Source of the DNA: Hypanus sabinus
Lineage: Eukaryota
Length of the DNA stretch: 64,000 bases
Direction: 5' to 3'
Assembly: GCF_030144855.1 (NCBI RefSeq)
Contig: NC_082709.1
Coordinates: forward strand, 172,360,001-172,424,000
The position numbers were made by a program, and so were the translations under genes. Of the stretch, positions 6,017-43,618 are shown in pieces (the first letter of the stretch is position 1; every line of letters starts with the position of its first letter). The notes under the pieces are model-generated. The model worked only from the letters and a program-made list of their open reading frames with translations. It ran no database searches and was not told the DNA's origin.

Positions 6017-6139
6017 CAATGCAATCTACCCTGACCCAATTAATCCTTGCTAGATTTCACACTCTCTGGCATTTAACCAGCAGCTGTGATATTATCAGCC
6101 AGTTGTTAAAAAGAGAAACAAACTGTACGATATAAACAG

Positions 6140-6570
6140 AAACACGAGATTTGGCAGGTACTGAAAATCCAGAGTAACATGCACAGAAAAATGCTGGAGG
6201 CAGCATCAATGGAGAGGAATAAACAGTCGATGTTTCAGGCCAAGACCCTTCATCAGGACTGAAAAAAAAGAAGAGGGAAGATGCCAGAATAAGAAGGTGA
6301 GGGAAGGGAAAGGATTACAAACTGGAAGCTGATAGGTAAGGCCGGGTGAGGGGTAAAATAGGTGGGTGGGGGAAGGGAGATGAACCTAGGACGTGACAGG
6401 TGGAAAAGGTAAAAGGCTGAAGAAGAAGGAATCTGATAGGAGAGGAGAGTGGACTGTGGGAGAAAGGGAAAGAGGACGGACATCAGGGGGAGGTGGTGGG
6501 TAGGTGAGGAGGAGAGAAGAGGTAAAAAGGAAGCCAGAATAGAGGAAAAGAAAAAAAGATGGTGGAGAGG
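6140..6570 (-). mobile_element. Penelope-like pLTR fragment
   Basis: Same pLTR and tail sequence. Hammerhead-like core at 6224-6261. Confidence 0.82.
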
Positions 6571-7286
6571 GAACCCTGTAAGCTAATTGAAAACTTGGCA
6601 GCTTGAAGAAGATTGCAATGATAAGAGGTTGTATATGAAATTGATGAGGCAGGAAAGGCAAATTCCTAAGTGATGGGCAGAGGCTGCAAGGTGAATTACA
6701 TTCAGATTAGTCTTATTACTCAAATGTACATCAAAACATAGTGTGAAATGTGTTGTTTGTGTTAACAACCAACACAGTCTGAGAATGTGCAAAGGGCAGT
6801 TTGCAAAGTGGGGCCATTTTTCCGTTCCCAACATAGCATGCCAACAATGTTCAGCAGTACGTCACACAACCAATATACAACAAGACCGGAAACCGGAGGT
6901 CCATGGGCCAGTCTTCATCAAAGGATTTGAGGCAGAGAGGGTCAGCAACTTTAAATTCCTCCATGTTATCATTTCAGATGAAATACAAGGGCATTCCATG
7001 GCAGGCCATGATGCAACCAGTCAACGTGGTTTAGGAAGGAGATCAGTCAGATCTCCCAATACCAACCAAGCATCTCATTAATTATCAAAACAAGTAACAA
7101 ATTCTGATGTGTTTCCATTCTACTGAGACTACTCTTTGATACATGATGTTGAGAGCACTGGTCTTCAATGTATTCTGTTATGGACAGAAATGGGCATTAC
7201 ATGAACAATGATGTCATTATGCATGCCTGACGCCCAAAAAGCAAGTGACATGTCATCCAATTCTGAGCTTAAAGCCTTTGTTTCAT

Positions 7287-8055
7287 TCTTTATGAAACAG
7301 TGTATTCTGCTTAATTGGGACACATCAAGACCAGTACATTTTGGTCCAATTAAGTGGCTACCTCGATTAGGCAAAGTTCCATGGAAGTAGTTAAAAATAT
7401 ATAAAAAAGATAAACTACTATTTGACTGAGTAACAAGTTATTTATTTAAATGAAAAACAGAACAAACACTGTCAATGCTTCTACGTTACTATAAAACTGA
7501 GTATTATTTCCTAAAAGTTATCAACAGAGGAATTAATCCAGTGGACACTGCCGTGTTCTTTTGATTGACCGCAAAACAGGCAAAATTAATGCAGACACGT
7601 AATGTAGATAATGAACTGCCTTCATACAATCCCTCAACAATTGCAGTCCCCAAATCTTCTATTTTTTTGTATAAAATTCAAGATAATTCTTGTTACTTCA
7701 AATTCATCGTAGTTCCTAATATGTTGTAGTGAAATTGTTTCGTTTTCACTCCCAACCATTTCAGGTATCTGTAGGCTTGAAACCACAGTGAGCAAAACGA
7801 TTCTGAATTGTCTTATTGCTAACTTCTCGCCAACTCTAAATGACAAAAATTGCAGCAGCCACCGCTATGTTAAAATAGTTCACTCTAAGCACAGTCTAAA
7901 GGACACACAAGTGCACGCAACCGATGCTAGTTCAGCAACGGTCTCCTGTCCTAATTAAGCAACATTTTTCCCAAATAAATGAAGGGAATTTGGCTGTTTT
8001 TTCAGTTTGTTTTTGTTCTTCAAGAGTTAAACCAAGTAAGCTGAATTTACAACAC
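7287..8055. mobile_element. Tigger/pogo-like non-autonomous remnant
   Basis: cagtg..ttaattgggaca end and repeated ccaattaag subterminal motifs in inverted arrangement. Confidence 0.5.
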
Positions 8056-9012
8056 TGGGGCCTAAATATAACAAATGAATGAATACTGTAAGCTGTCTGT
8101 ATATTCATCTAGTGTTCAGTGCTTTGCGTGATTCGTCTGTCTCTGTTTGTTTGCAGAGATATAAGAATTCCACTAGGATTTCTCAATGTTGGGCTCCAAG
8201 TCTTTTGGGATATCTACCAATGTGATTAGCTTTCTTGCACACCTGAATAAAATTCCTACGTCTGAGATTTCTCCAACGAAAATTACTTAATGAGAGGCAG
8301 ATTCGTTAACGAAATGTACAAAGCTGCTCTGATTTAACATACATATCTGTGTACCAGCTGAAGATTTCATTTCACAGGGGAGTACACACATTTGAATAAT
8401 GGCAAAGACGAATATATAGTTAAATGGTATGCAGTCAGCAAGGTGTTTTTCACCAGGATTCTGTTTAGTTCACAATCGAAAGCAATAAAGAGCGACTTCT
8501 AACCATCAGCAGAGAGCCTGGTCTATTTTTAGACATTTCCTGAATTCATTTAGTGTCCTCACAGTGAGCAGATATGTGTGGAAAAACATGCTGCCAGTGG
8601 TGTGAAGCTCAGGAGCAGAATTAAAGAATTTGACCCGTTGAACCTGACCCACCAGTCAATGAGATCTATGCTGATCTGTGACCAGACTCCAGCCTTTGCT
8701 CTATTTCTTTAATGCTTTTAGTTAAGAGAAATCTATCAATATTAGGTTTAAATTTACCAAAAGGCACATCACAGGGAGACCAAACAGAACATAGAATCAT
8801 ACCGCCCAGGAGCGGATCGTTCAGCCCACAATATTGTGCTGAACCAGTTATATTAGTAATCAAATAGCCAACTAAACTCTTCTTTTTACACAATGTCCAC
8901 ATACGATTTTAATGTCTGATTTTAATGGGACAGTTCTATAGTTAAGCACAAACTGGACATCACACTATTTCTTAAGTGACTCTTGGAATTTGTTTCATTT
9001 CATGATAATGTG

Positions 9013-9672
9013 CACTCGGTGACTACTTTATTAGACACAAGCCACTGAGTGTATGGACTTCGAGGTTTGACGTGTTGTGCATCAGAAATACTCTTCTGCA
9101 TAACACTGTTGTAATGTGTGGTTACTTGAGTTACTGTCATTTTTCTGTTAGCTTGAACCAGTCTGCCTGTTCCACTCTGACCTCTCTCTTTAACAAGTCA
9201 TTTTCGCCCACAGAACTGCCGCTCACTGAATGTTGTTTTTTTGTTTCTCGCACCAATCTCTTTACACTCTAGATACTGTGCTGCGTGAAAATCCCAGAGG
9301 ATCAGCAGTTTCTGAATAATCAAGCCACTCCAGTCTACCATCAACAATCATGCCACGGTCAAAGTCACTTAGATCACACTTCTTCCCCATTCTGATGTCT
9401 GACCTGAACAACTACTGAACCTCTTGACCATATCTGCATGCTTTAATGCATTGCGTTGCTGCCGCATGATTGGCTGATTAGATATTTGCATTAACAAACA
9501 GGTGTACATAATACTTAATAACTTCAGTCCTGATGGAGGGTCTCGGCCCAACTCTTTTCCATAGATGCTGCCTGGCCTGCTGATGTCCTCCAGCACTTTG
9601 TGAGGGTCGCTTTAGATTTCCAGCAGCTGCAGATTTTTCCATATTTATACCTAATAAAGTGGCCACAGAGTG
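9013..9672 (-). mobile_element. Non-autonomous Tc1 element, same family, with a Penelope tail inserted at ~9523-9640
   Basis: TIRs cactc(a)gtggccactttattag at both ends. Homologous to 3110-3625. Confidence 0.85.
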
Positions 9673-10111
9673 CACAACTTAGTTTTTGCCATCTGCTAAT
9701 GTCCTTGAAACAAAGCTAGTATGAGTTCATCAAGGAGAAATAAAATCACAGGGCATTCATAACGGTAGAGATCGACTTTACGAGATGCTGTAGTAACAGC
9801 TTCTTCCTGCCCCACTATGCCCCATCTTGTCCTGCTCTCAGTTTCCTCATCTGCAGCCCTTTGTTGCCTCCATCTATCGCCTCCCAGCTTTTGTTACTAT
9901 TTCTGCCTTCCCTTCCTATCACCCCCTCAGCTGGCTCCACCGATCTTCCCTTCACCTTATTTTACTAGCCATCTTCCCTCTATTTTCCAGCCCAGATGAA
10001 GGGCCTCAACCCGAGTCATTGACTATCCATTTCCCTCCACAGATGCTGCCTGGCCTGCTACATTCGTCCATCATCACGTTTTATGCTCAGACTGCTCTTG
10101 AACCCCGTTGA

Positions 10112-11080
10112 CAAACAGCGAAAATCTGCAGCTGCTGGAAATCCAAGCAACACGCGTAAACTGCAGGAGGAACTTGGCAGGCCAGGCAGCATCTATGGAA
10201 AAGAGAACAGTCGACGTTTCGGGCCGAGAGCCTTCGTCAGGACTGGGGAGAAGGAAGATGAGAAGTCAGAGCAAGAAAGTGGTGGGGAGGGAAATACAAG
10301 GTGGCAGGTGATAGGTGAACGCGGGAGAAGGGAAGGCGGTGAAATAAAGAGCTGGGAAGTTGACTGGTGAAAGAGATAAAGGGCTGGAGAAGGAGGAATC
10401 TGACAGAAATCTGACAGAAAATCTGATGGAAAATCTGATCATGGAAGAAAGGGAAGGGGGAAGAGCACCAGAGAGACGTGATAGGCAGGTAAGGAGATAA
10501 GGAGAGAGAAGGAAACAGGAATGGGGAATGGTGAAGGAGAGGGGTGGGGGGGGGGCAATTACCGGAAGTTTGAGAAATCGATGTTCATGCCATTAGGTTG
10601 GAGACTAGCCAGATGGAGTATAAGGTTCAGCTCCTCCAACCTGAGGGTGGCCTAATCGCAGCAGTAAAGGAGACCAAGGACTGACACGTCGGAAAGAGAA
10701 TGAGAAGTAGGATTGAAGTGGGCAGCCACCGGGAGATCCTGCTTTCTCTGGTTGACAGCGCATGGGTGCTTGGCGAAGTGGTCCCCTAATTTACGTGGGG
10801 TCTCACTGATATACAGGAGGCCACACCAGCAGCACTGAATATGGTAGATTACACCAACAGACTCACAAGGTGAAGTGTCGCCTCACCTGGAAGGACATTT
10901 TGGGGCCCTGAATGGTAGTGAGGGAGGAAGTGTAGTGACAGATGTGGCATTGGTTTTGCTTGCAAGGATAAGTGCCAGGAGGGAGGTCAGTCGGGAGGGA
11001 CAAGTGGGCAATGAAGATCCCTACAGAAAGCAGAAGTTGGTGGGGGGGGGGGGAGAAAAAGATATGCTTGGTGGTGGGAA
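10112..11080 (-). mobile_element. Penelope-like element, 3' fragment
   Basis: PTTKHIF...DLPPGTYPCKQNQCHICHYTSSLTTIQGPKMSFQVRRHFT, followed by pLTR with hammerhead and tail. Confidence 0.88.
10208..10245 (-). ncRNA. Minimal type I hammerhead ribozyme motif
   Basis: CAGTC CTGACGA A GGCT-CTCG-GCCC GAAAC GTC GACTG. Perfect 5-bp stem I, one mismatch in stem II. Confidence 0.65.
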
Positions 11081-14000
11081 CATAGTTCAGTTCATAAGTC
11101 AATATACCATAAGACATAGGAGCAGAGTTAGGTCACATGGCCCTTCAAGTCTGCTCTGCCATTTCATCAGGGCTGATCCTTTTTTCCCCTCCTCAGCTCC
11201 CTTCCCAATCTTCTCCCATTAACCTTTGATGCCATGTCCAGTTAAGAACCTGTCAAGCTATAAGACCATAGGACATAGGAGCAGAATTAGGCCATTTGGC
11301 CCATCAAGTCTGCTCCGCCTATTTAGTTTCAGATTCAGGTTTTTTTTATTTCATGTGCATTGAAACATACAGTGAGATGCGACATTTGTGTAAACAAGCA
11401 ACACATCCAAGGAAGTGCTGGGGCAGCCAGTCACGGTCACCTACGACTGGCTTTGCCGGCGTCTCGGAGAGGCAAGCTCTCCGAAGGTGGGTACATGGCT
11501 TGGAAAGGTTTGTGCTCAGTGTGGGGTCAGGAGTGTGGGCAGAAATCTCGTAGTAGGGACCGGAGAGCTGTCTGACAGTGAGGCCAGACCTGATTAGAGC
11601 ATGGCACGGAACGTGAATGGAAACTCGCCCGGAATTAGGACTAGGGTTGATTCCTGTGGATAAGAGAAATGTGACCACGAGCAAGGACGTGGATGAGAGG
11701 GATATGGAGAGCTATGGTCCGGATGCAAGTCGTTCGGACTAGGCAGTTTTTAAATGGTTTAGCACAAAGTAGATGGGCTGAAGGGCCGATTTCTGTGCTG
11801 TAGCTTTCCATGACTCTATGAACATACATCATAGTTGATTAAAAAACTTCACCAACTGAAACTCTACCCTCACATACACAACCTGAGGAAATTATTGGAA
11901 GTGCATTGGCACTATTGTCAACACAAGAATTGGGAGCTTTGAACAAGTCGATTTGAAAGGATCTCATCTTGGATGCAGCAAACAGAAAAAGCCACCAGCT
12001 ATTCCCAATTCTAGTGTGTTTCTTTCTTCCAACAACCTAAATCAAAAGAAAAGTCATAGATTTTATTTCTTTACCAGGTAAAACATCTAATTTGTGATGA
12101 AATGTTGTTCAGTAACTAATCCTGATAAATCATCTCACTAAAGCACTGGTTGGATATGTCAGTCAATGAGTGGGAAGAGCAATGCATGGTTAAACCTGCA
12201 AGGTTAACTAGAAATAAAGATGTTTGGTGTTGGTTGCAATTCTTTCTTTGTTCATAACTGTCACTCACTGGCCATCTTCCCTTCTGCTTGAGGTAGAGTA
12301 CTTTCTTGCATAAATTTACAAATGTTTTCACACCACCCTATTTTCTACACTATCCATGTAGAAAAATTGAAAACTCCTGGGATTTGATTATTCAGCACAG
12401 GACTCTTAAGTCCCAGATTCAATTTTGTTGATTTTTTTTTGAAAATCAGTAAGTTTATTTTTGATCTCCGGAGAAGTGCCCCACGATGCTGAAAATCATC
12501 CTTAATGACAATTCCAAGAAAATGTGGTTTGCTTTTGCTTGAAGACAATCAGCCAAGTTACAGGGTAGCGTGAGCTATCGCAAGCAACTTGGCAAGTCCA
12601 TGCCCTTCAACAGAATGGTGGAGAGGCTCAAGGAAAGGTTAGTCACATCAGACACAGAGATGCTCTTATACTGTTTGGATGGGGATGAGGGGCCTAAAGA
12701 TGGAAAATTCCATAATGCCGCCAGGAATATTTTTCTCAACAGCATGGAGTTATCTGTTTCTGTAGAAATTGGCCATTGAATGCACAATGTTGCTGAGTAA
12801 ATACTATTATCTCTGCAATCCACAGCCCGTAATTTCCCTTTGGGAGTTGTGGTTTCGAACTAGCTGTACTGCTTGGTGTCTTTGTGGTATCCCAAAGGAT
12901 TTGGCGAGCTGGCCTCTCCAGAGCGCTAGTACAGCCATGGCCATTGCTGGAGCATTGGGCCAGATTGAAGCAGCGTTGCCCAGGCCAAGGAGCGAGAAAT
13001 AAATTGATGTCTAGCCGATTTAAGTGCCGAGCCACATTAAAAAGATTAAGGTGTCGAGGCTGAGAGTGATGGACAAACCAGTGTTCAGCTCACTATTCTG
13101 AGGCTCCATCACTGAACTGGCCCTGCAGCTGTGACCTGCACCAATCCGGTTCCTGGACTGGCGTCAGCACTGGATTTGGCACAACCCTCCACACCATTGA
13201 GGACATGATTCAGGAAGGTAATATCCACCACTAAGGACCCTCACAACCCAGGCGAAGCCTCTTCTCATTACTACCATCAGGACAGAGGTACAAGAGACCG
13301 AAGACATACACTCAATGTTATAGGAACAGCTTCTTCCCCTTTGCAATCTGAGCAGCCCATGAAACCGTGAACTTACTTATAGCCCATTTAGGGCAGCAAT
13401 GAAGGTCCTCCATCTCTGGCAGTGTTCAGGACTTCCTTCATCATGTCAGTAGCTTCCTCTCGGTTTTCACTACTGTCGCTCATGCAAGTCTCAGGTGGAG
13501 ACTCAGGAATACCGTCACTGATATCGAAGGATTCTTCATTGCCGCTGCCTTTCAAATTTTGTTTTACCGGTCAGAGTTGTTAGCTCTGAGATGAACCCTT
13601 GAGGTGAACCACTCTTAGTCTGGCCTCTACCCTTTGACCTGCTTGGCATGGATGACCCTAACAAGAGCCAAAGCATAAACCCCTGACTCCAGCCAACACA
13701 TCTCTCTGGATCATTGGGAGAGTTACGGTCCTCTTGGAGGAACCCATGAACACTATTTCATTATTCCTGTTTTTGCAGTATTTATTTACTTTGTACTTTG
13801 GAGCAAATTTATGTTTGCACCATACCACTGCATAAAACAACCAATTTCAAATCATAAAAGACAGTGATACTAAATATGATTCTGATCAGACTGCAAGATC
13901 TTCAGAGAAAAGTTCTGGAAAAGAAGTAAAATTTATTCCCTAACAGATAAAAGAGAGACTGTTTTGAACAAACGGAACTCATTTCACCATGTAATCGAGG

Positions 14001-14956
14001 CTATGTGATTGGCTGTCCATCATCTCTGACAGTGACAGTAAAAGCCAATGGTTACCTTTCCTGTCACTTTGCCCCTCCTCCATCGCCGCAGGACTTGAAG
14101 GTCGGGTTAAGTTGATGTGACCTTGTGGGAGAGTTTTTCAAGTGGAAAAGTCATTGCACTGGGGCTGGTCCACTCTCTCAACCTTGGAAGTCCTGTTTTG
14201 GAGGTATGAGTAGTCGTCACAAACTGGGATTTTCCTTGGTGGCTGTGGATGACCATGACATCTTCATCGCCTTGCCATGACCTTCACTCTCCAAGAAGCG
14301 TCACAGACCCACCTTCCTGGCCATTGGATCTTGCTGTTGATCTCGCCGGAGCAGAGTTCCCATGCTGGGACAAGCATGTCCCTACCTCGCTGAGGTATTG
14401 AGGTCCACCAGTTAACCTCACCTGGTTTAGCCCACCTGTCGAAGTGGTGTACTGGGCTGTGGCCACTGTCACAGTTACTTAGAGCCTCAGGTGAGAGCTG
14501 TGTGTCCACAGGGGGACAAAGGTGAGAGAGCTGCACGAGAATGGACATGACAAGTCCTTCACCAGAGGTGCTACCCTCTCCTGGACACATCCCGAGCTTA
14601 TATATTTATTAGGCTATGTAAATGTATGTAAAAATTAATAACTTAATACAAATTAAGTGGCTGTTGACCACATGACATAATTTATACAAGTTGATACTAT
14701 TGGTAGGATGTAATATACAAACCTTCTCTTTTATTCTCGACATAGTTTCCTACCTTACTACAAAGTGGTACATATAGCTGGAAGTGTCTCTTGGCTTGTC
14801 ATAAAACAAGCCAAAAGATCTGGTGCTTTTACTTTGAAGTGAAGCATGGAGTTGCCATGGTAACCTTGCTCAATATTTGCTCCTCAATCAGCATGACTAA
14901 ATCAGGTTACCTAGTCATTATCACATTCATATTTGTGAGATGCAAATTGGCTGTCA

Positions 14957-16005
14957 TAGAAACATAGAAAATAGGTTCAGGAGTAGGCCATTCGGCCCTC
15001 CAAGCCTGCACCGTCATTCAGTATGATCATGGCTGATCATCCAACTCAGAACCCTGTTCTTGCTTTCTCTCCATACCCCCTGATCCCTTTAGCCACAAGG
15101 GCCATATCTAACTCCCTCTTAAATATAGCCAATGAACCAGCCTCAATTGTTTCCTGTGACAGAGAATTCCACAGATTCACCACTCTCTGTGTGAAGAAGT
15201 TTTTCCTCCTCTCAGTCCTAAAAGGCTTCCCCTTTATCCTTAAACTGTGACCCCTCGTTCTGGACTTCCCCAACATCGGAAACAATCTTCCTGCATCTAG
15301 CCTGTCCAATCCCTTTAGAATTTTATACGTTTCAATAAGATCCCCCCTCAATCTTCTAAATTCCAGTGAGTATAAGCCTAGTCGATACAGTCTTTCTTCA
15401 TCTGAAAGTCCTGCCATCCCAGGAATCAATCTGGTGAACCTTCTCTGTACTCCCTCTATGGCAAGAATGTCTTTCCTCAGATTAGGGGACCAAAACTGCA
15501 CACAATACTCTAGGTGCGGTCTCACCAAGGCCTTGTACAACTGCAGTAGAACCTCCCTGCTCCTGTATTCGAATCCTTTTGCTATGAATGCCAACATACC
15601 ATTTGCCTTTTTCACCGCCTGCTGTACCTGCATGCCCACCTTCAATGACTGGTGTACAATGATACCCAGGTCTCGTTGCACCTCCCCTTTTCCTAATCGG
15701 CCACTGTTCAGCTAATAATCTGTTTTCCTGTTCTTGCAACCAAAGTGGATAACTTCACATTTATCCACATTAAATTGCATCTGCCATGAATTTGCCCACT
15801 CACCTAACCTATCCAAGTCACCCTGCATCCTCTTAGCATCCTCCTCACAGCCAACACCGCCGCCCAGCTTCGTGTCATCCGTAAACTTGGAGATGCTGCA
15901 TTTAATTCCCTCTTCTAATTCATTAATATATATTGTAAAAAACTGGAGTCCCAGCACTGAGCCTTGCGGTACCCCAACTAGTCGCTGTCTGCCATTCTGA
16001 AAATT
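14957..16005 (-). mobile_element. CR1 LINE, 5'-truncated (RT C-terminal half and 3' UTR)
   Basis: ORFs 15712..15957 and 15046..15681: KFTDDTKLGG, QFNVDKCEVIHFG, RPHLEYCVQFWSP. (catagaaa)n tail. Confidence 0.95.
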
Positions 16006-18368
16006 CTAATCCTGTCATGTTTCCAACTATACAGAATCTTCATGCATGTACAGAGAGTGGACTAGCCACTTGGGCCTTTTGTCTACACTGTCATTCATTA
16101 ATATCATGATTAATGTCAATCTTCTACCTTAACACTATTTCCAGTATTATCCTTGTATACCCTGAATCCATTAATAGACAGAAATCATTCCAGCTTTGAA
16201 TTCAATGATTGAATTCTTACAACCTTCAGATGGAGAGATATCCAAAGAGTCATCACGCTTTGCCCGAGGATATTTCTCCTCATGTCAGTCCCAAATAGCC
16301 TGCTCTTTATTCTGAGAGAAATTCTCCTTTTTCTCGACTCCACATCCAGAGGAAATATTCTCTCTGAAGGCAGTCTGGTGACCTCTGTCAGAAATCTTTG
16401 TTGAGATCTAGACAAAACTTTAGAGAATACAGTTCCAGCCAAATTCCCACAAGGCGAACCCACCAAACCTGGACCCAATTCTAATGAATCTTCACTGCAC
16501 TCACAGAATAACAAGTACAAACCTGGGTAACAAAAGGATTCTTTTTTTGACAGATGTCCAGAGTCAATTTTGCATATAAGCCAGGAAATATATAAAAATC
16601 ACTCAGTATGGTGACCATACCTCCACAGATGTGAATGATATCAAAAGCACATCATACAGATAAAAAAAAATTTCTACCGAAAGAACACAAAAAAACTATG
16701 AAATATAGCAACTTTTCCTCGGACGGAAATGGATAATGTGAGAGGGCATTATTTCACGGTGATCGGAGGAAAGGCGGAGTCCAGCGTGACGGGCGTGTAT
16801 CGAGCACCCTGCTGGAGCAGTGGTAGGGGCAGGTACACCAGGGAGATTTAAAAGACACTTGGAGAGGCTCATGGTTGAGAAAAACATGGGAGCTATGTGG
16901 GTGGGAAGCATTCTACTGATCTTGGATTCAAGGTAGCTTAGTGGCTAGTACAACTTTTTGCAGTACCAGCGACCCAGATTTAATTCTGGCCGTAGCCTGT
17001 AAGGAGTTTGTACATTTCCCCATGACCGTGTGGGTTTCCTCCCACAGTCCAAAGACATACTAGTTGGTAGGTAAATTGGTCCTGGGTAGGTCTGTAGTCT
17101 AATGTAGTTTTTTCTGTGCTGTCTTTTTAAGTAGTTCAGTCTAGTTTTTGTACTGTGTCATGTAACACCATGGTCCTGAAAAACATTGTCTCATTTTTAC
17201 TATGCACTGTACCGGCAGTTATGGTCAAAGTGACAATAAAAGTGACTTGACTTGATTTGACATTGTAAATTATCATGTGATCAGGCCAGGATTAAATTGG
17301 GTGGACTGCTGAGCGGTGTGTCTCAAATAGGCTGGAAGGGCCTAGTCCATGCTGAACCTCAATAAATAAATTTGTGGGCAACATTGTGGGCCAAAGTGCC
17401 TGCACTGTCTGCTATGCTCTATGTATAAAACCTACGTTTAAACAATTTTTAAAGATCTTCAAAGATTTGGCAAGGTAACATTTCTGGCTAAGGAAATACA
17501 TGGACAGGCTAAGGCCTATCCAGTGCTGTACATTTAATGATCTAAGTCCTGTGGATGATATTCAAATGTTACTTTGACTTGGCCATTTGGAGAAACATTA
17601 AAAAAAATTCTACAGACCAGTTATCATTAATGACCTCTCATAGAACGAAGTCTGACCCCAGAGTGACGTAGCTGATTCTGTGAATTAAATAGCTGCAGAA
17701 ACAAGTACAGCCCGAAAGGAGTATAGTTGGATTAGCGTAATTAATATCAGTCTAAAACTAATCGTGCCTTTGATCTGTCTGGATCTGTGTAAGGTTTTAT
17801 AAGCACGCCCAACACGTGGACAAAAATATCCATTCATTCATTTGTACACAATATTCCAATTGGAAATTTTCAAATTATTAGTGTTTATTTGTTTTTTGTC
17901 TGATTCTCATTTGGATTTAAATGCTGTGGGTTACAATGACAATAATGCGATAGCTGGGAGCTACAGTAATTACAAAGATTACAGGAGCTGAACTCTGCAC
18001 TAGTAACTCCCAGTGAGACCTGAAGTGTTCAGTCCCTCAAGTCAGACTAAATGAAAACCACATTCCTTTGTCTCCAGACTTCGCATATCTAGGCCTGTTA
18101 CTAATTATTAGATAAAATCTACTTCAGAAACTAACCTTCTATGTAATAAAAGGCATTGAATCCAGCCATGAAATGCGACAATGTTAGCACTATTTGCGTT
18201 TCACAGGAAAGCTCATATTGGAAAGATAATAAAAGGCCTTGCATAGAAAACAGAATCATTATTTTTTATTTAAAAATGCAGGAATGACTGGAAGAAGGGA
18301 AAATAATTAAGAAGCCTTTTTTAATCCTAATTTGTAGCAATTAAAAAATATCATTAGTCCTTGTCAGG

Positions 18369-18746
18369 AACACACACATAGTGCTGGTGGAACTCAATAG
18401 GTCAGGCAGCATCTCTGGAAAGGAATAAAAAGTCGATGTTTCAAGCTGAAATCCTTCATCAGGACCTGTTGTCTAGAAAGAAGCGATGGGCTTTGAGGCC
18501 TTCTTGAGGAGAGATCTGAGTGTATAGGGACTGGACATTCATGGTGAAATTGAGGCGATTGGATCAAGTTGCTGAAGAGAGTATGTGAAGCGTCATGGAC
18601 GTAGGTGGGGAAGGACTGAACCAAGGGGGATCTTTGCCTAAAATGTCAACTCTATTCCTTTCCATGGATGCGTCTGACCTGGTAGCTCTTCCGGCATTTT
18701 GTATGTGTTACACTGGGTTTCCAGCATCCGCAGAATCTCTTGTGTT
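18369..18746 (-). mobile_element. Internally deleted Penelope-like element (inverted tail, RT fragment, hammerhead and tail)
   Basis: RT fragment VQSFPTYVHDASH.. at ~18466-18630, flanked by oppositely oriented pLTR tails. Confidence 0.8.
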
Positions 18747-21509
18747 TACTAGTCGTTGATAGTTCAGGTAGTGTTGTTGTACCTAGAGGATGTTTTATCA
18801 CTTTGGACTATCATGCCACCTTATGATCATGCATAGATTCACCGAGCAACACACGCAAAATGCTGGCAGGCTCAGCAGCTCGGGCAGCATCCATGGAGAA
18901 GAATAAACAGTCGATGTCTTGGGCCGAGACTCTTCTTCAGGACTGGAGAGGAAGGGGATTTACTGAGGTGATTTTAATCCAGTCTCTTGCTTACCCTATA
19001 CAAGGCTGTGATTGAATACACCACTGAGATTCAAGTTTATTTATCAAGTGTACAGTGAAATGTACTGTTTGTGTTATCGACTAACCTACCCAAGGGTGCT
19101 CTGGGTCAGCCTGCAAGTGTCGCCTCTCATTCTGGCGCCGAAACAATGCTTGGCAGAACAACACAAAAAAGCAACCAATCAACAACAGGAAAACAAGGCC
19201 CATTCCTCCGTCTGACCCACACACATCCTTTCACCCCAAGTAAGGCCGTCCTTCCTCATTGACCTCCAGTCCCCAGCTTGAAATCGAACTTGCAGATATT
19301 GACCTTCCACTTCCCCAGCACACTTGAAGAGATTTGCAGACTCGGTTCCTCTCAATGGGCCCTCAACTTCCAAACTTCCAACTCACTCCTCATACCCCGA
19401 TCCTCCGGCATCAACCCCAAGGACCTCCCAGTCACCAAACACTAGGCCTCAAACTCCAGGCTCGTCGAAGACGAGGCTCTGAACTCTAAGCCTCACCCTC
19501 GAATCTCACCGATTTGCAAAGCTGTGGGGTTATTGGAACACGTTGGTCCTGCCCACAGAGGCATCCAGAGCTAAATTCTGCACCAAACTCACTTGTGGTT
19601 TGTCAAGCAGCCATTACTTGACCATTCTACCCTTTCAGAAATACACTTACCTTACAAAGCAAACACTGTAAGAAACTCAGAAAACTAAGAAGCTCTGTTC
19701 CCTCATTTTAATTTTCCTTATATTTAACGTGGTGCAGATTTGTCTATCGTCGCCACTTGTGCTTTCTGAGCCGAGAAGGTGTGCTGGCAGTGGAACTAGA
19801 GCTTCATCACTGGTAGATATTAACTTTGAAAAGGTTTAACACACTTGGGCAATGATGGGGTTAAAGTGAAACTCTGTCTGAACTGCCTTCCACATACAAG
19901 ACAGCAATCTAATCTGGATCCCATTTTGCTGGCTCTGATTTTTTTTTCTCGCAACTGTTCGCCACACTAATAGAGCTGAGGGCAAAAGGAAACATTTATA
20001 CCAGAAAGTGTATAAAACCTCAGGGGTGAAGGGTCAGTGATTACAGGAAATGCGGCCAAAAGCATTGTGTGCAGTTGAGGAATGAGGGGCAAGAGGTTTC
20101 TATTTCAGGCCACAGGATGCGAGATGTTAACAAGTGAGAAAGGAACAATGTAAATCTTTGGTGAAACTAAACCTCGCTTCACCTCTGACCCGGACATAAA
20201 TATTGCAGCTATCAGTTTTAATAAATAATGGTTTAGTTATTGTTTAAAAGACCACCCATCACTAAAGTATAAATACCATTGAATTACTTAAATTAATGTG
20301 TTGGAAGTGTTCACTGCATTTAGCTAAATAAATTTTACTGTAAATTTAGCAAGTACTTTTGCGGTTAGGTTATGTATTGTTCCCTCTTTACAGCCCGAAG
20401 TACACATGGTCACCATCTGTACAACGTGTTGTATAATCTCCGTCAGAGAAACATAAGAAGTCAAAATAGAATAAATCCCTTTTACCATTGCAAGCCCAGT
20501 GGTTTATTTAACTCTCCCCTCCTGCACCCCCCCCCCCCCCGGGTGGTACCAGGTCATGCAGCTCAGAAAGGTCCCCTGTCCCCCTGTCCATGCTGGGACG
20601 ATGCCTGGTCGGCACAGAATTAGCTGAACTCGTGGCAGCGAGGGGGCTCACTGCAGTGGAGTTCAGCACCCCAGCGTCAAATCATTGACTACGGCTGAGT
20701 GAGTGTGCTGGTCAAATTGTCCCAGCTGACACTGAGGGAGAGAAAGGGTTAGGTATTATCCCCTCAGTCAAATAAGCTGGCAGCATTCATTGCTCAGGAC
20801 CATGTCTCGAATAGGCACTTCTTCGGAGGGCACCTATCATCGAAGAAACTTGACAACTCTGAGAAAAAGAGATCACTGTAACTGTTGGTTTCTGGCAAGA
20901 CGGCACCAGAGAACAATGGCGACATCCTAAAAACAACTCACGGAACTCATAGATACCTTTCCCCTTCCGAAAACAATTCTTCTGAACTGCGATCGATTGT
21001 AACCTGGACTTTCCTCTTTAAGCCAACTGAACAGTCTGGGAGATTCAATGAGGATGAGAGCGGAAGGTGCGCCTAGATCGTCGGTGGGGGTGCACGCGAC
21101 GTCGGTTCCTAACAGCAGGGCACGAACCCGTGGTCGGCTCCATTGCTCCGCGCTGAGGACGCGAGCGGAAGATGATCAGCGGCGTCAGCCTGCGTTTGGC
21201 CAGTGGCTTCTCACTGGTGGCGGCAGGCGGAAGGTGCAGCTGGAGCAGCTGTTATCCTGCAGCCGCCAGGATTCACTCACCTCGGCCGCTCCATGCCTGT
21301 GGGCTCTCCTCTGGGGATCCTGCAGTTCGTGTTATTGGTCTACCTTTTATTGTTTGCATGATCTTTTCTCATTTTTCACACATTGGGTGTTGGTAGCGTT
21401 GTTGTGTGGGGATGTTCTTTAAGTGGGTCCTATTTCGTTGTTTTGTGGCTGTCTGCAAGAAGATGAATCGCAAGGTTGTATACTCTATACATACTCCGAA
21501 CTTTTAGTT

Positions 21510-23538: not shown

Positions 23539-24594
23539 CCAGATCGCAGTAGGGTTCTGATTGACAGAGAGCTGCACCGACACCCACACAGTTAAAGACA
23601 AAAATATTTGCTGCACTTTCAAACATTGAAACATGCAGCAAAATGTGTCATTTGTGGCAAATCAAATCAGTGAGGATGGTGCTAGGCAGCCCTCAAGTGT
23701 CACCATGCTTCCAACAACAGCATAGCATGCCCACAGCTCACTAATCCTAAGCAGTCTTTGTAACGTGGGAAAAAACTGGAGCACGCAGAGGAAACCCACA
23801 GGGTCACAGAGAGAACGTATAAACTCCGTACGGAATTCCACCCCGACTGGAGAGCACTACAGCTGTAAAGCTACACGCTAACTACAACACTACCGTGCCA
23901 CTCAGTTACACAAAGGTCTTCTCAAAAACCATTTGCAACTCAGCCCTAGCGCCTGATTAGTCTTAGGCTCCCTTGCACTTCAACAGTCACTGAATCAACC
24001 TGCAAGTCTAGATCTTGCTCCACTCCCCAAACTAGTGATTTAGGACCTGGGTTTATTTCTCATTTATGTGCTACCATCCGCAGCGGACTTCGAGGCCAGC
24101 GTTTGAATCCCGGGTTCAAACCCAGCCGGCTCCTTGCAAGCTTTCCATCCATACCGGGTTGAGCGTCGAGCCTCGGGAAACACACAGATGCCAACAGAAA
24201 CGGCAAGGTGTGCCCGAAGTTCCACAAGCCGTGGAAGGGAACGACAACAACGACTGTCATTGTCCCTACCTGCCTCAGTGTGTTTCTTCACTCTGAGGTT
24301 TGAGGGTTAAGTAGTGCTTCAGAAACTCCAGCACAGTATCAAGGCTGGGCCAATGAATGCTGTGGGAAGGCAGCACCATTGGGTCAGATGCTAAATTGAA
24401 CCCCTTTCTCTTCTCATCTCAACTCCCATCTCGCTATTTTATACTCCAGGTCAATATTTATCTCCCAGTTGCCATTACCAAAAGAGGTTGTCTAGGCGTT
24501 ATCACATTACAAGAGTGATGTTCCCAACTTTACCAAAGTGATGACACTTCACAGATACTCCCAGCTGCCATTTGCAGTGTATATTTTCTGTATA

Positions 24595-25111
24595 CAACCC
24601 GTGCAAAAGTCTGAGCCACATATATATCAATAAGACCTTTGCACAGTACTGTAGCAACTTTATGTATTGCACTGTACGGCTGCCACACAAAAAAACAAAT
24701 TTCAACACGTATGTGAGTGACGATAAACTTGATTCTGATATGGGTCCCCATTGTCGACAGAGAGAGGGAAAAAGGCAGGGAGAAGGGAATCGTGGCTGGG
24801 AAAGGGGAGGGAGTGGGAAGCACCTGAGAGACATTCTGGAATGATCAATAAACCAATCGTTTGGAATTAAATTACCTTGCCTGGTGTCTCAGGGCTGTAT
24901 GTATCTGCATCCGCGTCACACCCTGCCCTTGGCATCCCTTCTCTGCCACCTGTCTCACACCCCCCACACCCGCGGCACACCATCCTCACCATTCCCAACG
25001 TTCTTTGCCCCGCCAGATTTACGAACTCGCTCTCCCCTCCAATACAGTACTGTGCAAAAGTCTTGAGCACTTTAGTTATATAAATATCTGCCTGAATTTT
25101 GCACAGTACTG
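24595..25111 (+). mobile_element. Composite element: two Tc1/mariner-type mini-MITEs flanking cargo (copy 1)
   Basis: Mini-MITEs at 24595-24651 and 25045-25111 with TIR CAGTACTGTGCAAAAGTC, each TA-flanked. Confidence 0.82.
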
Positions 25112-27599
25112 TATAGGAGCATTTGCCAACCCAATTAAATTTCTATAAAAATCTATCACAAACAACAGAGCCCCCATCCCTGATCCCTGTGCGACATCTC
25201 TGGTCATAGAATTACGTCCCTCCACAATCACCCTATGTATTCTAATAGTCATGCCCAACTTGAATCCAATCTATGAAGTCACCATGGTCCCATGTGCCTC
25301 CAGGATCAGTATGGCTAACAGGAAACCATTAAGGTTTGTTCAGACAGGATTACAACCCCTAAACACAAGGGATTCTGCAGATGCTGGAAATCTTGAGCAA
25401 CAAATTGCTGGAGGAACTCAGCAGATCAGACAGCATCTACGGAGGGGAAAAAACTGACAATGTTTTGGGCCAAGGCCCTTCATCAGTGACTTGGTGAAGA
25501 TGTGATCAAGTTTGCTGATGATTTAAAGATAGATTGGTTAGAAATTTGATAGGCAACAACAAGGGTCATTCTAGGTCATTCTGTTGTGCTAGAAAGCTGA
25601 GGTCAGCAATAAGCCCCTGGGTTTTAGAAAGTGAATATTCATCACATTACCAAACCTCTCAGTTGACAAGAGTGAAGAAGAATGGCATGTATAATGGTTG
25701 ACAATACTCTCTTTCCATTTATCCTAGGAATGTTGCTTAGAGAAGCTTGTGTTCAATGTGCCTGTAGGAAATATTTCAGGTTAATGACCATCCATCCGAA
25801 GTAGGAAAATACAGAAAGGAAGCATCATTGTAGGGAAGTGAAGGGGTGGAGAGGAAAAAGGATCATAGTCATAGTCATACAGCACTACAGCACAGAAACA
25901 GGCCCTTCAGCCCACTTAGTCTATGCTGAACTGGTATTCTGCTAGTCCCATCCACCAGCACCTGGACCAGAGGTCTGCGCACCCATGTCCTTATCCAAAC
26001 ATCTCTTAAATATTGAAATCAAACTCACTCCCTCTGACAGTTCATTCCACATTCTCACTGCCCCCTGAGTGAATAAGATCCACCCCCCTCCCAAGTCCCT
26101 CTTAATTTTTTTAGCAGTACAGCACAGAATAGCCCTTCCCGCCATTCAAGCCCAGCTGCCTGACAACCCCTGACTTAACCCTAACTTAGTCACAAAACAA
26201 TCTACAATGATCCATTAACTTACTCAGTATGTCTTTGGACTGCGGGAAGAAACTGGCGTACCTACGGGAGAATCTACACATTCCATGAGGACGTACAAAC
26301 TCCTTACAGTGGATGCTGGGACTGAACTCTGAACTCTGCCACCCGGAGCTGTAATTCCCACACTACTGTGGCACCTTATTTCACCTGTCACCCTTAACCT
26401 ATGATCTCTAGTTCTAGTTTCACCCAGCTTCAGTGGAAACAGCCTGCTTGCATTAACTGCATCTATACTCCTCATAATTTTATGTATTTCTATCAAATCT
26501 CCCCTCATTCTCCTGCACTCCAGGGTACAAAGTCCTAACCTATTCACACTTTGCCTAGAACTCAGGCTAACATCTGCAATAGAGACCACAGCTGTCCAGA
26601 TGACAGAACTGATTTCAGTCTCACCTAGAAGAGGGGAATTAATACCAGTTGCTCAAGGCTGTTGTGTCCAGATCAATGTAAATAGAAGTGTTAAATAGAG
26701 GGAAAACAGCATGTATATAGACAGAGAAACTAAAACCAACATTCTGGGACCAGTAGCAAGCAGTGGCTGGAAATACAGAATAAAAGAAAATTCTGGAAAA
26801 ACTCAGCAGATCTGGGTAGAGGGAAAAACTGAGTTCAAGTTCTATGTGGTTGTCCCTGTGTCAGAAAAGTCCCACTCAGACAGGAACGAGGAGGAATGAT
26901 TCAGTGCTGAGAACTGAGACTGTAACCTGCCAAGATGTTTTACGGTTATTAAGATTACATTGCGATGTTATTAAAGTTTACTTTGGGATTTGTTGGAACA
27001 ATGCAAGAGCTCAAGGGTAAATAGGTCAGAGTGGGAGTGGGATGGAGAACTGAATTGACAGAAGGCTGGAAATGACTGAGGACTGAATGGAGATGTTTTA
27101 CAAAGCAGCCTGTCAACCTGCAGTTAGTTTATCCAGTCCAGATACAGTCACAAACTGAGCACCAAATGCCATTCATTGAGTTAAAAGAGGCAATGAGAAA
27201 AGGCTTTACCCCACCTGGGGCAGCACTGGAAGTCATAGTTATCCATCTCACTTCAAAATCCACAAACTCATTCTCCAGATCACCTCTGTAACGTCACCCC
27301 ACATTCAACAAGATGAGTCTCTCTAATCATTCATCCAGTCCCTGCAATCATTCCCTCCAGTCATCAGCCTTATACCCCAAATAGCACTTTGCAACGTAGC
27401 ACTGGTGAAACGGGGCGACACTTTGCACGCAGTTTACAAAACTTCTAAATCTACTGTTTCTGAGCTACCTTCACTGCAATCTGCAGCCAGAACTTCCTTT
27501 TAAGTAATGTACTTTTGAATCGTCTTAATAAACTAGTGATTTCACGACCTTCTGAAGGACATGGCGGACTGAACTCTCAACAATGCAGGAACGGCATCT

Positions 27600-31844: not shown

Positions 31845-32044
31845 NNNNNNNNNNNNNNNNNNNNNNNNNNNNNNNNNNNNNNNNNNNNNNNNNNNNNNNN
31901 NNNNNNNNNNNNNNNNNNNNNNNNNNNNNNNNNNNNNNNNNNNNNNNNNNNNNNNNNNNNNNNNNNNNNNNNNNNNNNNNNNNNNNNNNNNNNNNNNNNN
32001 NNNNNNNNNNNNNNNNNNNNNNNNNNNNNNNNNNNNNNNNNNNN
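31845..32044. other. Assembly gap (200 N)
   Basis: Run of exactly 200 N, a typical fixed-size scaffold spacer. Confidence 0.99.
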
Positions 32045-33377: not shown

Positions 33378-36300
33378 CTGCAAGGAAGCAAAGAAAATAG
33401 TCAAATGTCAATAGCTTTTAGCCTCCAAGGGTTCCTGGGCTGGAAAATCAAAGACATAAGACAAAAAGACACAGGAGCAAAGTTAGGCCACCCAGTCCAT
33501 TCCATTGTGGCTGATTTATCATACACCTCAACTCATTCTCCTACCTTCTCACCAGAACCTTTGACACGAAGACTAATCAAGGTCCTATCAACCTCCGCTT
33601 TAAATATACCCAAAGACTTGGCCTCCAGAACCAAATGTGGCAATAAATTCCATTGATTTGCCATGCTGTGACTAAAGAAATTCTTTCTTATCTCTGTTCT
33701 AATAAGATGTCCTTGTATTCTGAGGCTTTCCCCCTTGGTCCTAGACACCCCCACTACAGGAAATAACCTCTCCACTCCCACACTATCTAGGCCATTTCAG
33801 TATTTAATATACTCTAAGTGTATATAATGTAGAGTTGAGAGAGAAAGGGAAATAGAGAGAGGAAATTGTTATCATTTTGCACAGCTATTCATTTAGTCCC
33901 GCCGTAGTATTTTTGTTATATCCCACAGGTTCCAAATGGCCAACATTTCCTGTCCTCCCATAAAAACATGGTGCTAGACACACACAGCATGTCGGGTAGC
34001 GACTGCACTGAAAGAAACAAGTTCAAGTTTAAAGTTTATTGTTATCTGACTGCATATACTGTACAAGCAAACAAAACAACATTTCTCTGGATCATGGTGC
34101 AAATAATTTTTTTTCTGATTTATCCTAGTTTAATCATGGTAACGTCCTCAATGCATTTTCTTATGTAGTAGTCACCGATCCCACATATTCATCAATGTTG
34201 ACGTGATGATTGTAGGTAGCCTCCTCCCCAAATATGCTCCTGCCCAGTTTTTGAAGCAACTCTGCAACTGTACAGCACTGCAGTGGCACCTTCTGGCCAG
34301 GTCCTGATCTCGCTGTGAAATGATTTGACTTGTTTAACCAGTGGTTAACAAAAGCGATTAGCAAAATGGAAATGGAGTCTGAGAACCCGAAGTGAGGCCA
34401 GGGTATAGCTTGTAGTCTCCGAAAACTTTGGTATAAACCAGGAGTGTTTTTAAATTGGCATGATTGAAGTCACCAGCCATCGGAGCAAGTGGCTTTGAGA
34501 TTGTAGATTGCACTGTAGAGCTCCCCCAGCGTTTCTCCAGCACTAGTACCAGCACGGGGAGGTTTGCAGATTTAAGCAGCAATAATCACCATGGCAGTGA
34601 ACTCCCTCAGTAAGTAGAAGGAAGGGTCTGCAGTTCACCATTAAAAACAGTATCCTCATTGTATCAACAGTATCCTCATCTCATCCTGAGGTGTTCGCAC
34701 ACCAGTTCTCAATGATTAGACACACAGTCCTTCATGGGTAGTAGAGCACGTAGTCATGGCTGAGTAGACCACGACGCGAAGCCACAGCCCACTCCCCATG
34801 TTAGTCCATGACTGTGCAACACCTTCATTATTCTGCTCACTCGCGAGCTAGACTTGAGGATTTTAATGTTTTCGTGTTTTTTGGTCATAGAAAACACAAA
34901 CAGGACAAGAACTTTCACCATTGGTTGGAGCTGGAGTGGCTGCAGTGCCATGCAGGCCACCATCTTGTATCTGGTTGAAAACCCCTCACCATAAACAGGA
35001 ATGTGAGAAAACAAATTAAATTTAAGGCTGGGGGAGAATGAATAGAAGCAACAGTTCCTGTCAGAGGAAAAGATTTGGGAACAGCTTCTTCCCCTCTGCC
35101 ATCAAATTTCTTAATGTACATTGAACCCATAAACACTACCTTACTCCTTTTTTTCTCTCTTTTTGCACTACTTACTTAACTTTATACACACACACACACA
35201 CACTTCTTACTGTAATTTACAGTTATATATATATACTGCTGCTGCATAACAACAAATTTCACGACATGTGCCGGTGATATTAAACCTGATTCTGATTCAG
35301 GGTCACTTAATGTACAAACACTCCTGTGTCCAGCGTCACTTTCTGGACATACAATCAATTTGTGTATTTATTTTGTGCTGCAATGGATCAGGAGTAACAA
35401 TAATTTTGTTCTCTTTTACACTGATATAATGGAAATGAGTTTAAGCCACCTTGAATCTCGAAAATGCTGGAGGAACGTCACAGATCAGGCAGTATCCATG
35501 CTGAGGAACAAAGAATCACCAAGAGATATCCTCAGTAGGATTAAGCCATAGTTTCCCAGGTGATTCATGTGGAGAAGTTCCTCTTCCTATCCATTCCTCT
35601 CCTACCCTCTCTGTAAATGAAAACGAACTTGTTGTCTCATGGTTCCAGTCCCAACGAAGACTCTTTGAGCTGAAACGTCAGCTCGGTTTATCTTTCCATT
35701 AATATTGCCAGACCTGCTGAGTGCTTTTCTGTTTTCAACACAGCATCTGTAATTTTTGATTTTCAATTCAAGTCCTCACTCACTGTCCCTGTCTCCTGCC
35801 TCCAATGCTTTAAACATTGAGTTATTATTGTTATTGTATATCTACTGAGATACAGTGAAAAGCTTTTGTCTGCATGTCATTCAATCAGATCTGACCATAA
35901 GTAATCAGAAGAGAAGAGAATGCAGAATATAGCATTCTGCAGTTACAAAGAAAGTGCAGTGCAGGTGGACAAATGAAGTGCAAGGGCCACAATGAGTTAA
36001 ATTGAGCTGAAGGATTAACATTTAAGACAGCAGAACAATTCTAACAGATGAAATGAATGGATCTGCTGTAGCCATCTCACAAAGAATTACTATGCTCCAA
36101 TACCATCAGGTGGACATCTCAATTCACTCACTGCCTCATGATCCTATTCAGGTTCCTTCTCCTTATGCTGCAATCTATCATCCTCTTTCCCCCACTCCAT
36201 TCCCCTCACCAACTTCTCCATTCCTGATTCCGCTCAGCCATTCTTTCCATCTCTCGAAAGTTCCTCTGGTTATTCTGCTATCTTTTACCACGCCTCTCAA

Positions 36301-41420: not shown

Positions 41421-43593
41421 ACAATAGACAAGAGACAGTAGGTGCAGGAGTAGGCCATTCGGCCCTGCTAGCCAGCACTGCCATTCATTGTGATCATGGC
41501 TGATCATACACAATCAGTACCCCGTTCCTGCCCTCTCCCCATATCCCTTGACCCCGCTATCTATAAGAGCTCTATCTAACTCTCTCTTGAATGCATCCAG
41601 AGACTTGGCCTCCACTGCCTTCTGGGGCAGAGCATTCCACATATCCACCACTCTCTGGGTGAAAAAGTTTTTCCGCATCTCTGTTCTAAATGGCCTACCC
41701 CTTATTCTTAAACTGTGGCCTTTAGTTCTGGACTCACCCTTCAGTGGGAACATGCTTCCTGCCTCCAGTGTGTCCAATCCCTTAATAATCTTACATGTTT
41801 CAATCAGATCCCCTCTCATCCTTCTAAATTCCAGTGTATACAAGCCCAGTTGCTCCAATCTTTCAACATATGACAGTCCCACCATTCCAGGAATTAACCT
41901 CGTGAACCTACGCTGCACTCCCTCAATAGCAAGAATGTCCTTCCTCAAATTTGGAGACCAAAACTGCACACAATACTCCAGGTGGGGTCTCACCAGGGCC
42001 CTGTACAGCTGCAGAAGGACCTCTTTACTCCTATACTCAATTCCTCTTGTTATAAAAGCCAGCATGCCATTAGCTTTCTTCACTGCCTGCTGTACCTGCA
42101 TGCTTGCTTTCCTTGACTGATGTCAAGAACACCTAGATCTCATTGTACTTCCCCTTTTCCTAACTTGACTCCATTTAGATAGTAATCTGCCTTCCTGTTC
42201 TTGCCACCAAAGTGGATAACCTCACATTTATCCACATTAAACTGCATCTGCCATACATTTGCCCACTCACCCAACCTGTCCAAGTCACCATGCATTCTCA
42301 TAACATCCTCCTCACATTTCACACTGCCACCCAGCTTTGTCATCAGCAAATTTGCTAATGTTACTTTTAATCCCTTCATCCAAATCATTAATGTATATTG
42401 TAAACAGCTGCGGTCCCAGCACCGAACCTTGTGGTACCCCACTGGTCACAGCCTGCCATTCCGAAAGGGACCCGTTAATCACTACTCTTTGTTTCCTGTC
42501 AGCCAGCCAATTTTCAATCCATGTCAGTACTCTGCCCCCAATACCATGTGCCCTAATTTTGCCCTCTAATCTCCTATATGGGACTTTATCAAAAGCTTTC
42601 TGGAAGTCCAGGTACACTACATCCACTGGCTCTTCCTTGTCCATTTTCAGTTACATCCTCAAAAAACTCCAAAAGATTAGTCAAGCATGATTTTCCCTTC
42701 ATAAGACAATGCTGACTCAGACTGATCCTTCTACTGCTATTCAAATGTGTCATAATTTCCTCTTTTATAATTGACTCCAGCATCTTTTCCACCACTGACG
42801 TCAGGCTAACCGTTCTATAATTCCCTGTTTTCTCTCTCCCTCCTTTCTTGAAAAGTGGGACAACATTAGCCACCCTCCAATCAGCAGGAACTATTCCTGA
42901 ATCTATAGAACATTGGAAAATGATTACCAATGCGTCCACAATTTCTAGAGCCACCTCTTTAAGTACCCTGGGATGTAGACCATCAGGTCCTGGGGGACTT
43001 ATCAGCCTTCAGACTCAACAGTCTATCCAACACCAGATCCAAAGTACCTGTTCAACTCATCTGCCATTTCCTTGTTCCCCATAATAAATTCACCCGTTTC
43101 TGTCTTCAATGGCCCAATTTTGGTCTTAACTATTGTTTTGCTATTCACATACCTAAAGCAGCTTTTACTATCCTCCTTTATATTCTTGGCTAGTTTACCT
43201 TCGTACCTCATTTTTTCTTGGCGTATTACTTTTTGTGTTACCTTCTGTTGCTCTTTAAAAGCTTCCCAGTCCTCAGGTTTCCTGCTCATCTTTGCTATGT
43301 TATACTTCTTCTCTTTTATTTTTATACTGCCCTTTACTTCCCTCATCAGCCACGGCCGCCCCTTACTCCCCTTAGGATCTTTCTTCCTCTTTGGAATGAA
43401 CCGATCCTGCACCTTCTGCATTATTCCCAGAAATACCTGCCATTTTTGTTCCACTGTCTTCCCTGCTAGGGTATTGTTCCATTGAACTTTGGCCAGCAAC
43501 TCCCTCATAGCTCCATAGTTCCCTTTGTTCAACTGTAATACTGACACATCCGACTTTCCCTTCTCCTTCTCAAATCGTAGATTAAAACATATC
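41421..43593 (-). mobile_element. CR1 LINE, 5'-truncated (~2.2 kb), in PSMG1 intron 4
   Basis: ORFs 43023..43547, 42589..42954, 42312..42644, 42140..42442 and 41514..42101 tile CR1 ORF2 ([25 protein letters not shown]). Confidence 0.95.
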
Positions 43594-43618
43594 GTCTCTA
43601 GAGATATTGTATCTCATA

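Follow-up and report, generated by a model that had tools for sequence, protein, structure and literature searches.

A non-coding Tc1-type unit with a complete hairpin element at each end, probably of composite origin, in the genome of a ray

Composite transposition, in which two small elements together move the DNA lying between them, is textbook matter in bacteria, while in eukaryotes it is met mainly as rare events (Ac/Ds) or as a product of engineering (the Sleeping Beauty "sandwich"). Small palindromic elements are themselves familiar, and MADE1, also called MiHsmar1, is an 80-bp mariner MITE of primates that consists of two TIRs placed back to back and flanked by TA. It makes a good model for the end elements, taken alone, of the unit described in this article, but it belongs to the mariner branch and not to Tc1, and to our knowledge no amplified composite is known that uses it as a pair of ends.

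The engineered Sleeping Beauty "sandwich" (SA) vector belongs to the Tc1 branch, places one complete element on each side of a cargo, the two facing head to head, and relies on the outermost ends to move the whole (PMC4229213). It is nevertheless man-made, its IR/DR ends are of ~230 bp, and its innermost ends were mutated against cutting (PMC4229213), whereas the ray unit has hairpins of 57-67 bp with undisabled inner ends (in copy 1 these are the best preserved) and forms a genomic repeat family. In the bacterial TIME-COMPs, two short non-autonomous inverted-repeat elements (MITEs) likewise bracket and mobilise DNA, with the transposase supplied in trans (PMC13367494). These are prokaryotic members of the Tn3 family, moving replicatively with resolution and carrying gene cargo in few copies (PMC13367494); the ray unit, in contrast, is a eukaryotic element of Tc1 type that moves by cut-and-paste, carries non-coding cargo and exists in many copies. 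The macrotransposons and alternative transposition of maize Ac/Ds also show how neighbouring class II ends can jointly move the intervening DNA (PMC3260210, PMC4270019), but there the ends are of the hAT type with 8-bp target duplications, the events are single, experimental or rare, and span up to 100 kb (PMC3260210, PMC4270019), and they were never amplified into a fixed short family. Finally, in the grapevine Pack-MITEs (PMC2817404) and in MER6 with its V-SINE domain, a vertebrate Tc1/mariner case (PMC6887750), a small non-autonomous DNA transposon amplifies foreign DNA. Each of these has one TIR per end, while the ray unit has at each end a whole TIR-loop-TIR element with its own TAs.

Why pay attention to such a unit? 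A vertebrate family fixed in composite form would show that this route is natural, able to amplify, and able to disperse arbitrary DNA; what is dispersed here is a LINE tail together with pieces of other repeats. It would also explain to annotators, in concrete terms, how one such unit could come to be listed as three "families" in automatic repeat libraries. A literature search returned no published work containing the TIR string and no cartilaginous-fish family of this build, and the composite form with MITE hairpins may be put, modestly, as a structural variant of known transposons. Its practical weight is modest as well, the copies being old and non-coding.

The window considered throughout is a stretch of 64,000 nucleotides from Hypanus sabinus (NC_082709.1, positions 172,360,001 to 172,424,000), analysed with the exception of an N run at 31845-32044 that marks an assembly gap. 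It contains the unit twice. The best explanation, to which we give a probability of roughly 0.6, is a non-autonomous and non-coding element of the Tc1 branch of the Tc1/mariner superfamily, with doubled hairpin ends and a composite origin. Read letter by letter at both sites, the same three-part layout of hairpin, cargo and hairpin appears in opposite orientations: copy 1 occupies 24593-25113 on the plus strand and copy 2 occupies 54929-55419 on the minus strand, the two being inverted and 30 kb apart. The unit measures 487-517 bp (about 490-520 bp), and in both copies each end is a TIR-loop-TIR palindrome of 57-67 bp with TA on both sides. Two TA-flanked palindromic mini-elements around ~390 bp of cargo, recurring in inverted form, were what the original prediction described, and this layout is confirmed at both loci.

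Copy 1 opens with an outer TA, the target-site duplication (24593-24594), at which homology with copy 2 stops. Next comes its left terminal hairpin of 57 bp (24595-24651, plus strand; profile E 5e-13), whose outer TIR is degenerate, with one base missing and several changed, and whose inner TIR agrees at 17/18 positions. An inner TA (24652-24653) then separates the hairpin from 389 bp of cargo, a non-coding mosaic (24654-25042, plus strand), and a second inner TA (25043-25044) leads into the right terminal hairpin of 67 bp (25045-25111, plus strand; profile E 1e-18), with TIRs at 18/18 and 17/18. The outer TA on this side lies at 25112-25113, and homology again stops there. In copy 2, the outer TA at 54929-54930 is the counterpart of the right end of copy 1. 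It is followed by a decayed hairpin of 67 bp (54931-54997, minus strand; profile E 8e-15) that is homologous to the right hairpin of copy 1, an inner TA (54998-54999), 353 bp of cargo with its parts in the same order as in copy 1 (55000-55352, minus strand), another inner TA (55353-55354), the 63-bp homolog of the left hairpin of copy 1 (55355-55417, minus strand; profile E 1e-15), and a last outer TA (55418-55419). Both inner TAs are therefore kept in both copies.

When up to 3 mismatches are allowed, the 18-nt TIR is present 5 times in the 64-kb window, where chance would give 0.09. Looser patterns recover all 8 TIR arms and nothing else convincing in the same window. When folding is compared with that of shuffled sequence, three of the four hairpins do better (z -2.8 for the left and -5.6 for the right hairpin of copy 1, and -5.7 for the one at 55355-55417), while the fourth, at 54931-54997, is decayed (z -0.2).

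A peculiarity is seen at the right hairpin of copy 1 (25037-25062 and 25094-25119), where the palindrome extends six bases beyond the TAs. The letters are CTCCAA-TA towards the cargo and TA-TAGGAG towards the genome, 5/6 bases being complementary, with a chance of ~0.005. At the homologous hairpin of copy 2 the extension is weaker and gapped (GACA..TA and TA-TGTC). As outer flanks should be unrelated target DNA, the extended palindrome of copy 1 is unexpected; it could be a trace of doubled-end processing.

The nature of the ends is supported by several features. TA is found at all eight hairpin borders, and the ends begin with CAGT, which is a Tc1 signature. In metagenome contigs the exact 18-mer was met at 20 loci, one of which (contig L006) carries TA and the 18-nt end identical base for base, along with a second copy of the TIR core ~190 bp inward, direct and not inverted, as in the IR/DR layout. 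The same contig holds the remnant of a transposase, with a downstream piece that matches DDE_3 (38.6 bits vs. a cut-off of 28.6) and an upstream piece with a weak match to HTH_Tnp_Tc3_2. This decayed Tc1-type element spans positions 1-1191 on the minus strand of the contig, and at least one stop and a change of frame interrupt its transposase reading frame. It may be related to the autonomous partner, the contig being metagenomic and not demonstrably from this ray genome. Two more metagenome contigs, L015 (546-1081) and L017, from another eukaryote, contain a plain, TA-flanked and AT-rich MITE of ~535 bp, with one TIR per end and microsatellites in the flanks, which has its first 22 nt in common with the terminal repeat. 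Ray copies of the unit were not found among the metagenome contigs with the TIR.

These matches place the ends within the Tc1 lineage. The unit also has what characterizes a Tc1/mariner MITE: a TA duplication, a TIR in common with an element encoding a DDE transposase (L006), and a small, non-coding and multicopy body. The original prediction had called for the autonomous Tc1/mariner carrying this TIR; a decayed gene remnant capped by it is present on the metagenome contig, and within the 64-kb window there is no Tc1 transposase adjoining this TIR.

How would such a unit move, and how could it have arisen? Going by the known mechanism of the family, a Tc1-type transposase acting in trans would pair the two outermost TIRs, and the complete unit would be cut out and pasted into TA sites. 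At the origin, two mini-elements would have landed ~390 bp apart in repeat-rich DNA, later to be used jointly, which would make the unit nature's equivalent of bacterial composite transposons and of the engineered Sleeping Beauty sandwich. This is the simplest account because the ends are complete, TA is kept on the cargo side, and the relatives within the lineage have single repeats; the structure of the unit thus makes an origin from two mini-elements likely. As in a composite transposon, each end is a complete, bounded element, and the unit inserts whole with its own target duplication. The claim of a composite transposon is therefore upheld in so far as one unit moved; as for two free mini-MITEs coming first, pattern search and profile found no solo mini-MITE in the 64-kb window. 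With two units observed, this absence means that solos are locally not much commoner than units.

The hairpins themselves can be compared in the two copies that were read directly. Likeness within copy 1 is 48/56, and between counterparts of the two copies it is 40/57 and 48/64. The higher likeness within copy 1 is not predicted by simple descent from one founder, although the sequences are short, and it could reflect noise, conversion between the ends, or a less simple history. Compared for separate descent of left and right ends, the four hairpins, short and decayed as they are, give no clear sorting.

The main rival of composite origin is a single parent whose ends were already doubled and whose interior was lost. 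In its explicit form, a deletion or capture derivative in the manner of Pack-MITEs, one parent with an inverted extra TIR near each end would have had its interior replaced during gap repair, and two mini-elements would never have existed. The lack of any solo mini-element in the window fits this, as does the second transposase site that IR/DR-type Tc1 elements such as L006 have inside each end, and there are familiar examples of MITEs whose interiors are captured DNA unrelated to them (PMC2817404, PMC6887750). Yet the inner repeat of L006 is direct and not inverted and lies ~190 bp in, and the related MITE of L015 has a single TIR per end, so doubled ends are not the standard form of the lineage. 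Moreover, the TA between hairpin and cargo, kept in both copies, is the mark of independent TA insertion, and capture needs none. We consider a capture derivative unlikely on balance, though it deserves to be kept in mind.

Under the preferred composite reading, the doubled ends might have a meaning of their own. Each unit would offer four transposase sites, two per end and inverted, and it is a tentative and rather doubtful idea that the unit owes its success to these. The doubled unit might be a better substrate than a single mini-element, an effect also seen with the engineered Sleeping Beauty sandwich. Were this true, the composite would outnumber its building blocks, and rays would harbour a self-standing natural "sandwich" family.

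That the three parts travelled together is shown by the comparison of the two copies. Copy 1 and the reverse complement of copy 2 align from end to end with MAFFT at 67-77% identity, segment by segment 0.67-0.70 for the hairpins and 0.71-0.77 for four cargo segments. In the first ~20 bases outside the outer TAs, identity falls to 0.26-0.28 on both sides. Hairpins and cargo being equally diverged between the copies, they are of the same age in both. The outer flanks, whose sharing the original prediction had named as grounds against itself, are unrelated.

The insertion site of copy 2 adds to this picture. To its left, the end of a CR1-like coding remnant (54905-54928, plus strand) reads G D L V E V, and to its right (55420-55600, plus strand; blastn to 52400-52501 and 45649-45819) the frame picks up directly after the outer TA, reads K I N R G V D K V ... 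F T Q R ... W N E L P, and runs on into the usual C-terminal LINE motifs. An uninterrupted CR1-like paralog at 52296-52345 reads R-G-D-L-I-E-V-Y-K-I-M-R-G-V-D, and it acts as an "empty site" for the complete unit, hairpins included. As had been proposed, copy 2 splits a CR1 remnant, and the unit was mobilised as one piece, with homology running through hairpins and cargo and ending at the outer TAs. Equal divergence of the parts and the split of the CR1-like frame argue that the whole unit was inserted as one cut-and-paste element. It is accordingly well supported that the three-part unit is a single mobile element, which entered two unrelated TA sites in separate events. At copy 2, the short string GACA (54925-54928) stands between the CR1-like frame and the outer TA; it is absent from the paralog at 52296-52345 and may go back to an old indel or be left over from the insertion itself.

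The unit is also found outside this genome. A segment of 1,501 bases around copy 1 was compared at 80% likeness with Logan contigs from four runs labelled as four organisms. Contigs that cross the left junction and the left hairpin into the cargo are present in 4/4 organisms (24142-24682, 24460-24685, 24270-24697, and 24223-24685), as are others that run through the right hairpin and over the outer junction on that side (25042-25339, 25012-25374, 25043-25339, and 25082-25339). The orthologous flanks differ from the window at ~2-3% of positions, plus a 16-bp indel. An empty orthologous site for copy 1, of the kind that the original prediction proposed to look for in related rays, did not turn up in the contigs of the four other organisms, the site being occupied in 4/4. 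Since it is occupied in all, the insertion of copy 1 predates the split of the four organisms; the unit is old and probably dead. The flanks also show a 16-bp and a 2-bp insertion behind 24443/24444 in 3/4 runs and a 12-bp insertion behind 25126 in 2/4, which are possible markers separating the organisms.

Across the four organisms, thousands of contigs match the unit at 80% or more, and tens of thousands match parts of it. In many contigs, cargo positions between 24872 and 24964 are followed at once by 25041, which immediately precedes the right hairpin, so there are further copies whose right-hand cargo is shorter. The contigs also contain many hairpins, without what flanks them, whose loops vary widely between copies. 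In run X14, the summed contig depth is ~8 for the single-copy flanks, 100,000-120,000 for the LINE-tail part, 160,000-260,000 for 24814-24915, ~5,000 for 24967-25017, and 4,000-19,000 for the right hairpin. Summed depth runs 10-50x higher over cargo parts than over the hairpins, although contig depth cannot rank parts; the joint sides amount to 22-27 letters, and contigs seem to stop at TIR arms. Most cargo relatives may be without hairpins, depth being only a hint of this, and the figures suggest that the LINE tail and the core also belong to repeats that outnumber the unit or are younger than it. Within the 64-kb window, both cargo copies carry both hairpins, with no lone cargo core, which disfavours the view that cargo without hairpins is greatly in excess. 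No third copy, solo hairpin or free cargo was found in the window by blastn, by mismatch patterns or by nhmmer profiles, which gave only LINE/SINE tails and a region at 11.0-11.2 kb that was rejected as a low-complexity false lead.

These depths are what could speak for another scenario, in which the cargo is a dispersed repeat and the mini-elements inserted separately, in each copy, at its two preferred-target borders: cargo pieces do look commoner than hairpins in the contigs, as a hint only. Four independent insertions at exactly matching positions would be required, against which stand the equal divergence of hairpins and cargo between copies, the CR1-like frame broken at copy 2 by a complete unit with its hairpins, and a cargo that has neither ends nor a target duplication of its own. 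Separate arrival is consequently improbable.

The composition of the cargo bears on what has been carried along by the composite unit. Its parts, in order, are the 3′ tail of a LINE/SINE, a stretch rich in purines, a core at ~24797-24963, and a stretch rich in pyrimidines. The tail (24672-24741, plus strand) has homologous tails elsewhere in the window, at 35232-35307, at 54299-54353 plus 54451-54482 (split by a 97-bp insertion), and at 58637-58696. It points rightward, that is inward, and its end lies inside the cargo, so the sequence that follows is not part of that retroelement. With a tail that ends internally and recurs elsewhere in the window, the cargo is foreign DNA. This tail does not match the CR1-like LINE at 41.5 kb at its 3′ end. 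Of the cargo parts listed in the original prediction, a LINE/SINE 3′ tail is present, the Rex type named there being a putative assignment, and the purine and pyrimidine tracts are seen too. The core (24797-24963, plus strand), which includes an AATAAA at 24847-24852, is shared with a repeat seen on many separate contigs of the four related organisms. The matching pieces are bounded at ~24797-24809 and 24954-24963, are ~82% alike, and define a core of 165 bp; some contigs of up to 1867 bases match 24799-24963 only.

Protein-coding content is not apparent, the ORFs of the unit giving no Pfam match. Captured host gene fragments, as carried by Pack-MITEs, were not found; the cargo derives from repeats, is of low complexity and matches no protein family. 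Tandem repeats were not found in the unit either, and with no tandem subrepeats and single short hairpins as ends it differs from foldback elements of the FB or Galileo type. A tRNA scan found no tRNA-like head, and no Rfam family reached threshold, the right hairpin scoring ~26 bits as miRNA-precursor-like vs. thresholds of 49-110. At one of the homologous tails mentioned above, the 97-bp unit at 54354-54450 interrupts the LINE/SINE tail and has one copy of a GTAAAA-containing duplication on either side; for a hammerhead at this place, no model reaches the cut-off in an Rfam scan of the whole window at gathering thresholds.

With a LINE/SINE tail inside the unit, one might think of a fold-back element mobilised by retrotransposition and not by cut-and-paste. 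This is very improbable: the flanking duplication is TA only at all borders, with no long target duplications, the ends agree at every base with the end of a Tc1 transposon, and the LINE tail, internal and directed inward, could not have served to prime the unit's insertion. Segmental duplication of one locus, to which two copies 30 kb apart in the same window could point, is excluded for practical purposes because the flanks are unrelated (26-28% identity just outside the outer TAs), the copies moreover being inverted and in different contexts.

Copy 2 lies in a gene. PSMG1 is encoded on the minus strand from 59649 to 37800, and the copy occupies its intron 2. The exons were recognised singly from frame translations and are not a spliced model: exon 1 starts at 59649 with M-A-T-F-F-G-E-V-V, exon 2 lies near 56.45 kb and exon 3 near 46.4-46.5 kb, followed by pieces resembling exon 4 near 44.1 kb, exon 5 near 40.9 kb, and exon 6 near 37.85 kb, all on the minus strand. 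The exon 4-like and exon 5-like pieces are separated by a CR1-like LINE whose RT frame is long and open (41517-43613, minus strand).

The AATAAA of the core occurs in both copies, at 24847-24852 on the plus strand in copy 1 and at 55154-55159 on the minus strand in copy 2. The exon positions on the minus strand show that its assignment to the sense orientation of PSMG1 intron 2 was correct. The further proposal, that the unit disperses this signal, holds in that both copies have it; it is unremarkable in that the 64-kb window counts 109 AATAAA, and for this reason the AATAAA of the unit carries no weight, so that its use for intronic polyadenylation would be speculative. The element is without evident host function, its AATAAA appears incidental, and there is no visible effect on PSMG1.

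By far the commonest repeat in the compared stretch lies just beyond copy 1, at 25324-25476, with a summed depth of 1.3-3.5 million in the four organisms. Many contigs join its position 25360 to 25400 on opposite strands, in a fold-back form, and its loose ends read like the repeat at 54354-54450.
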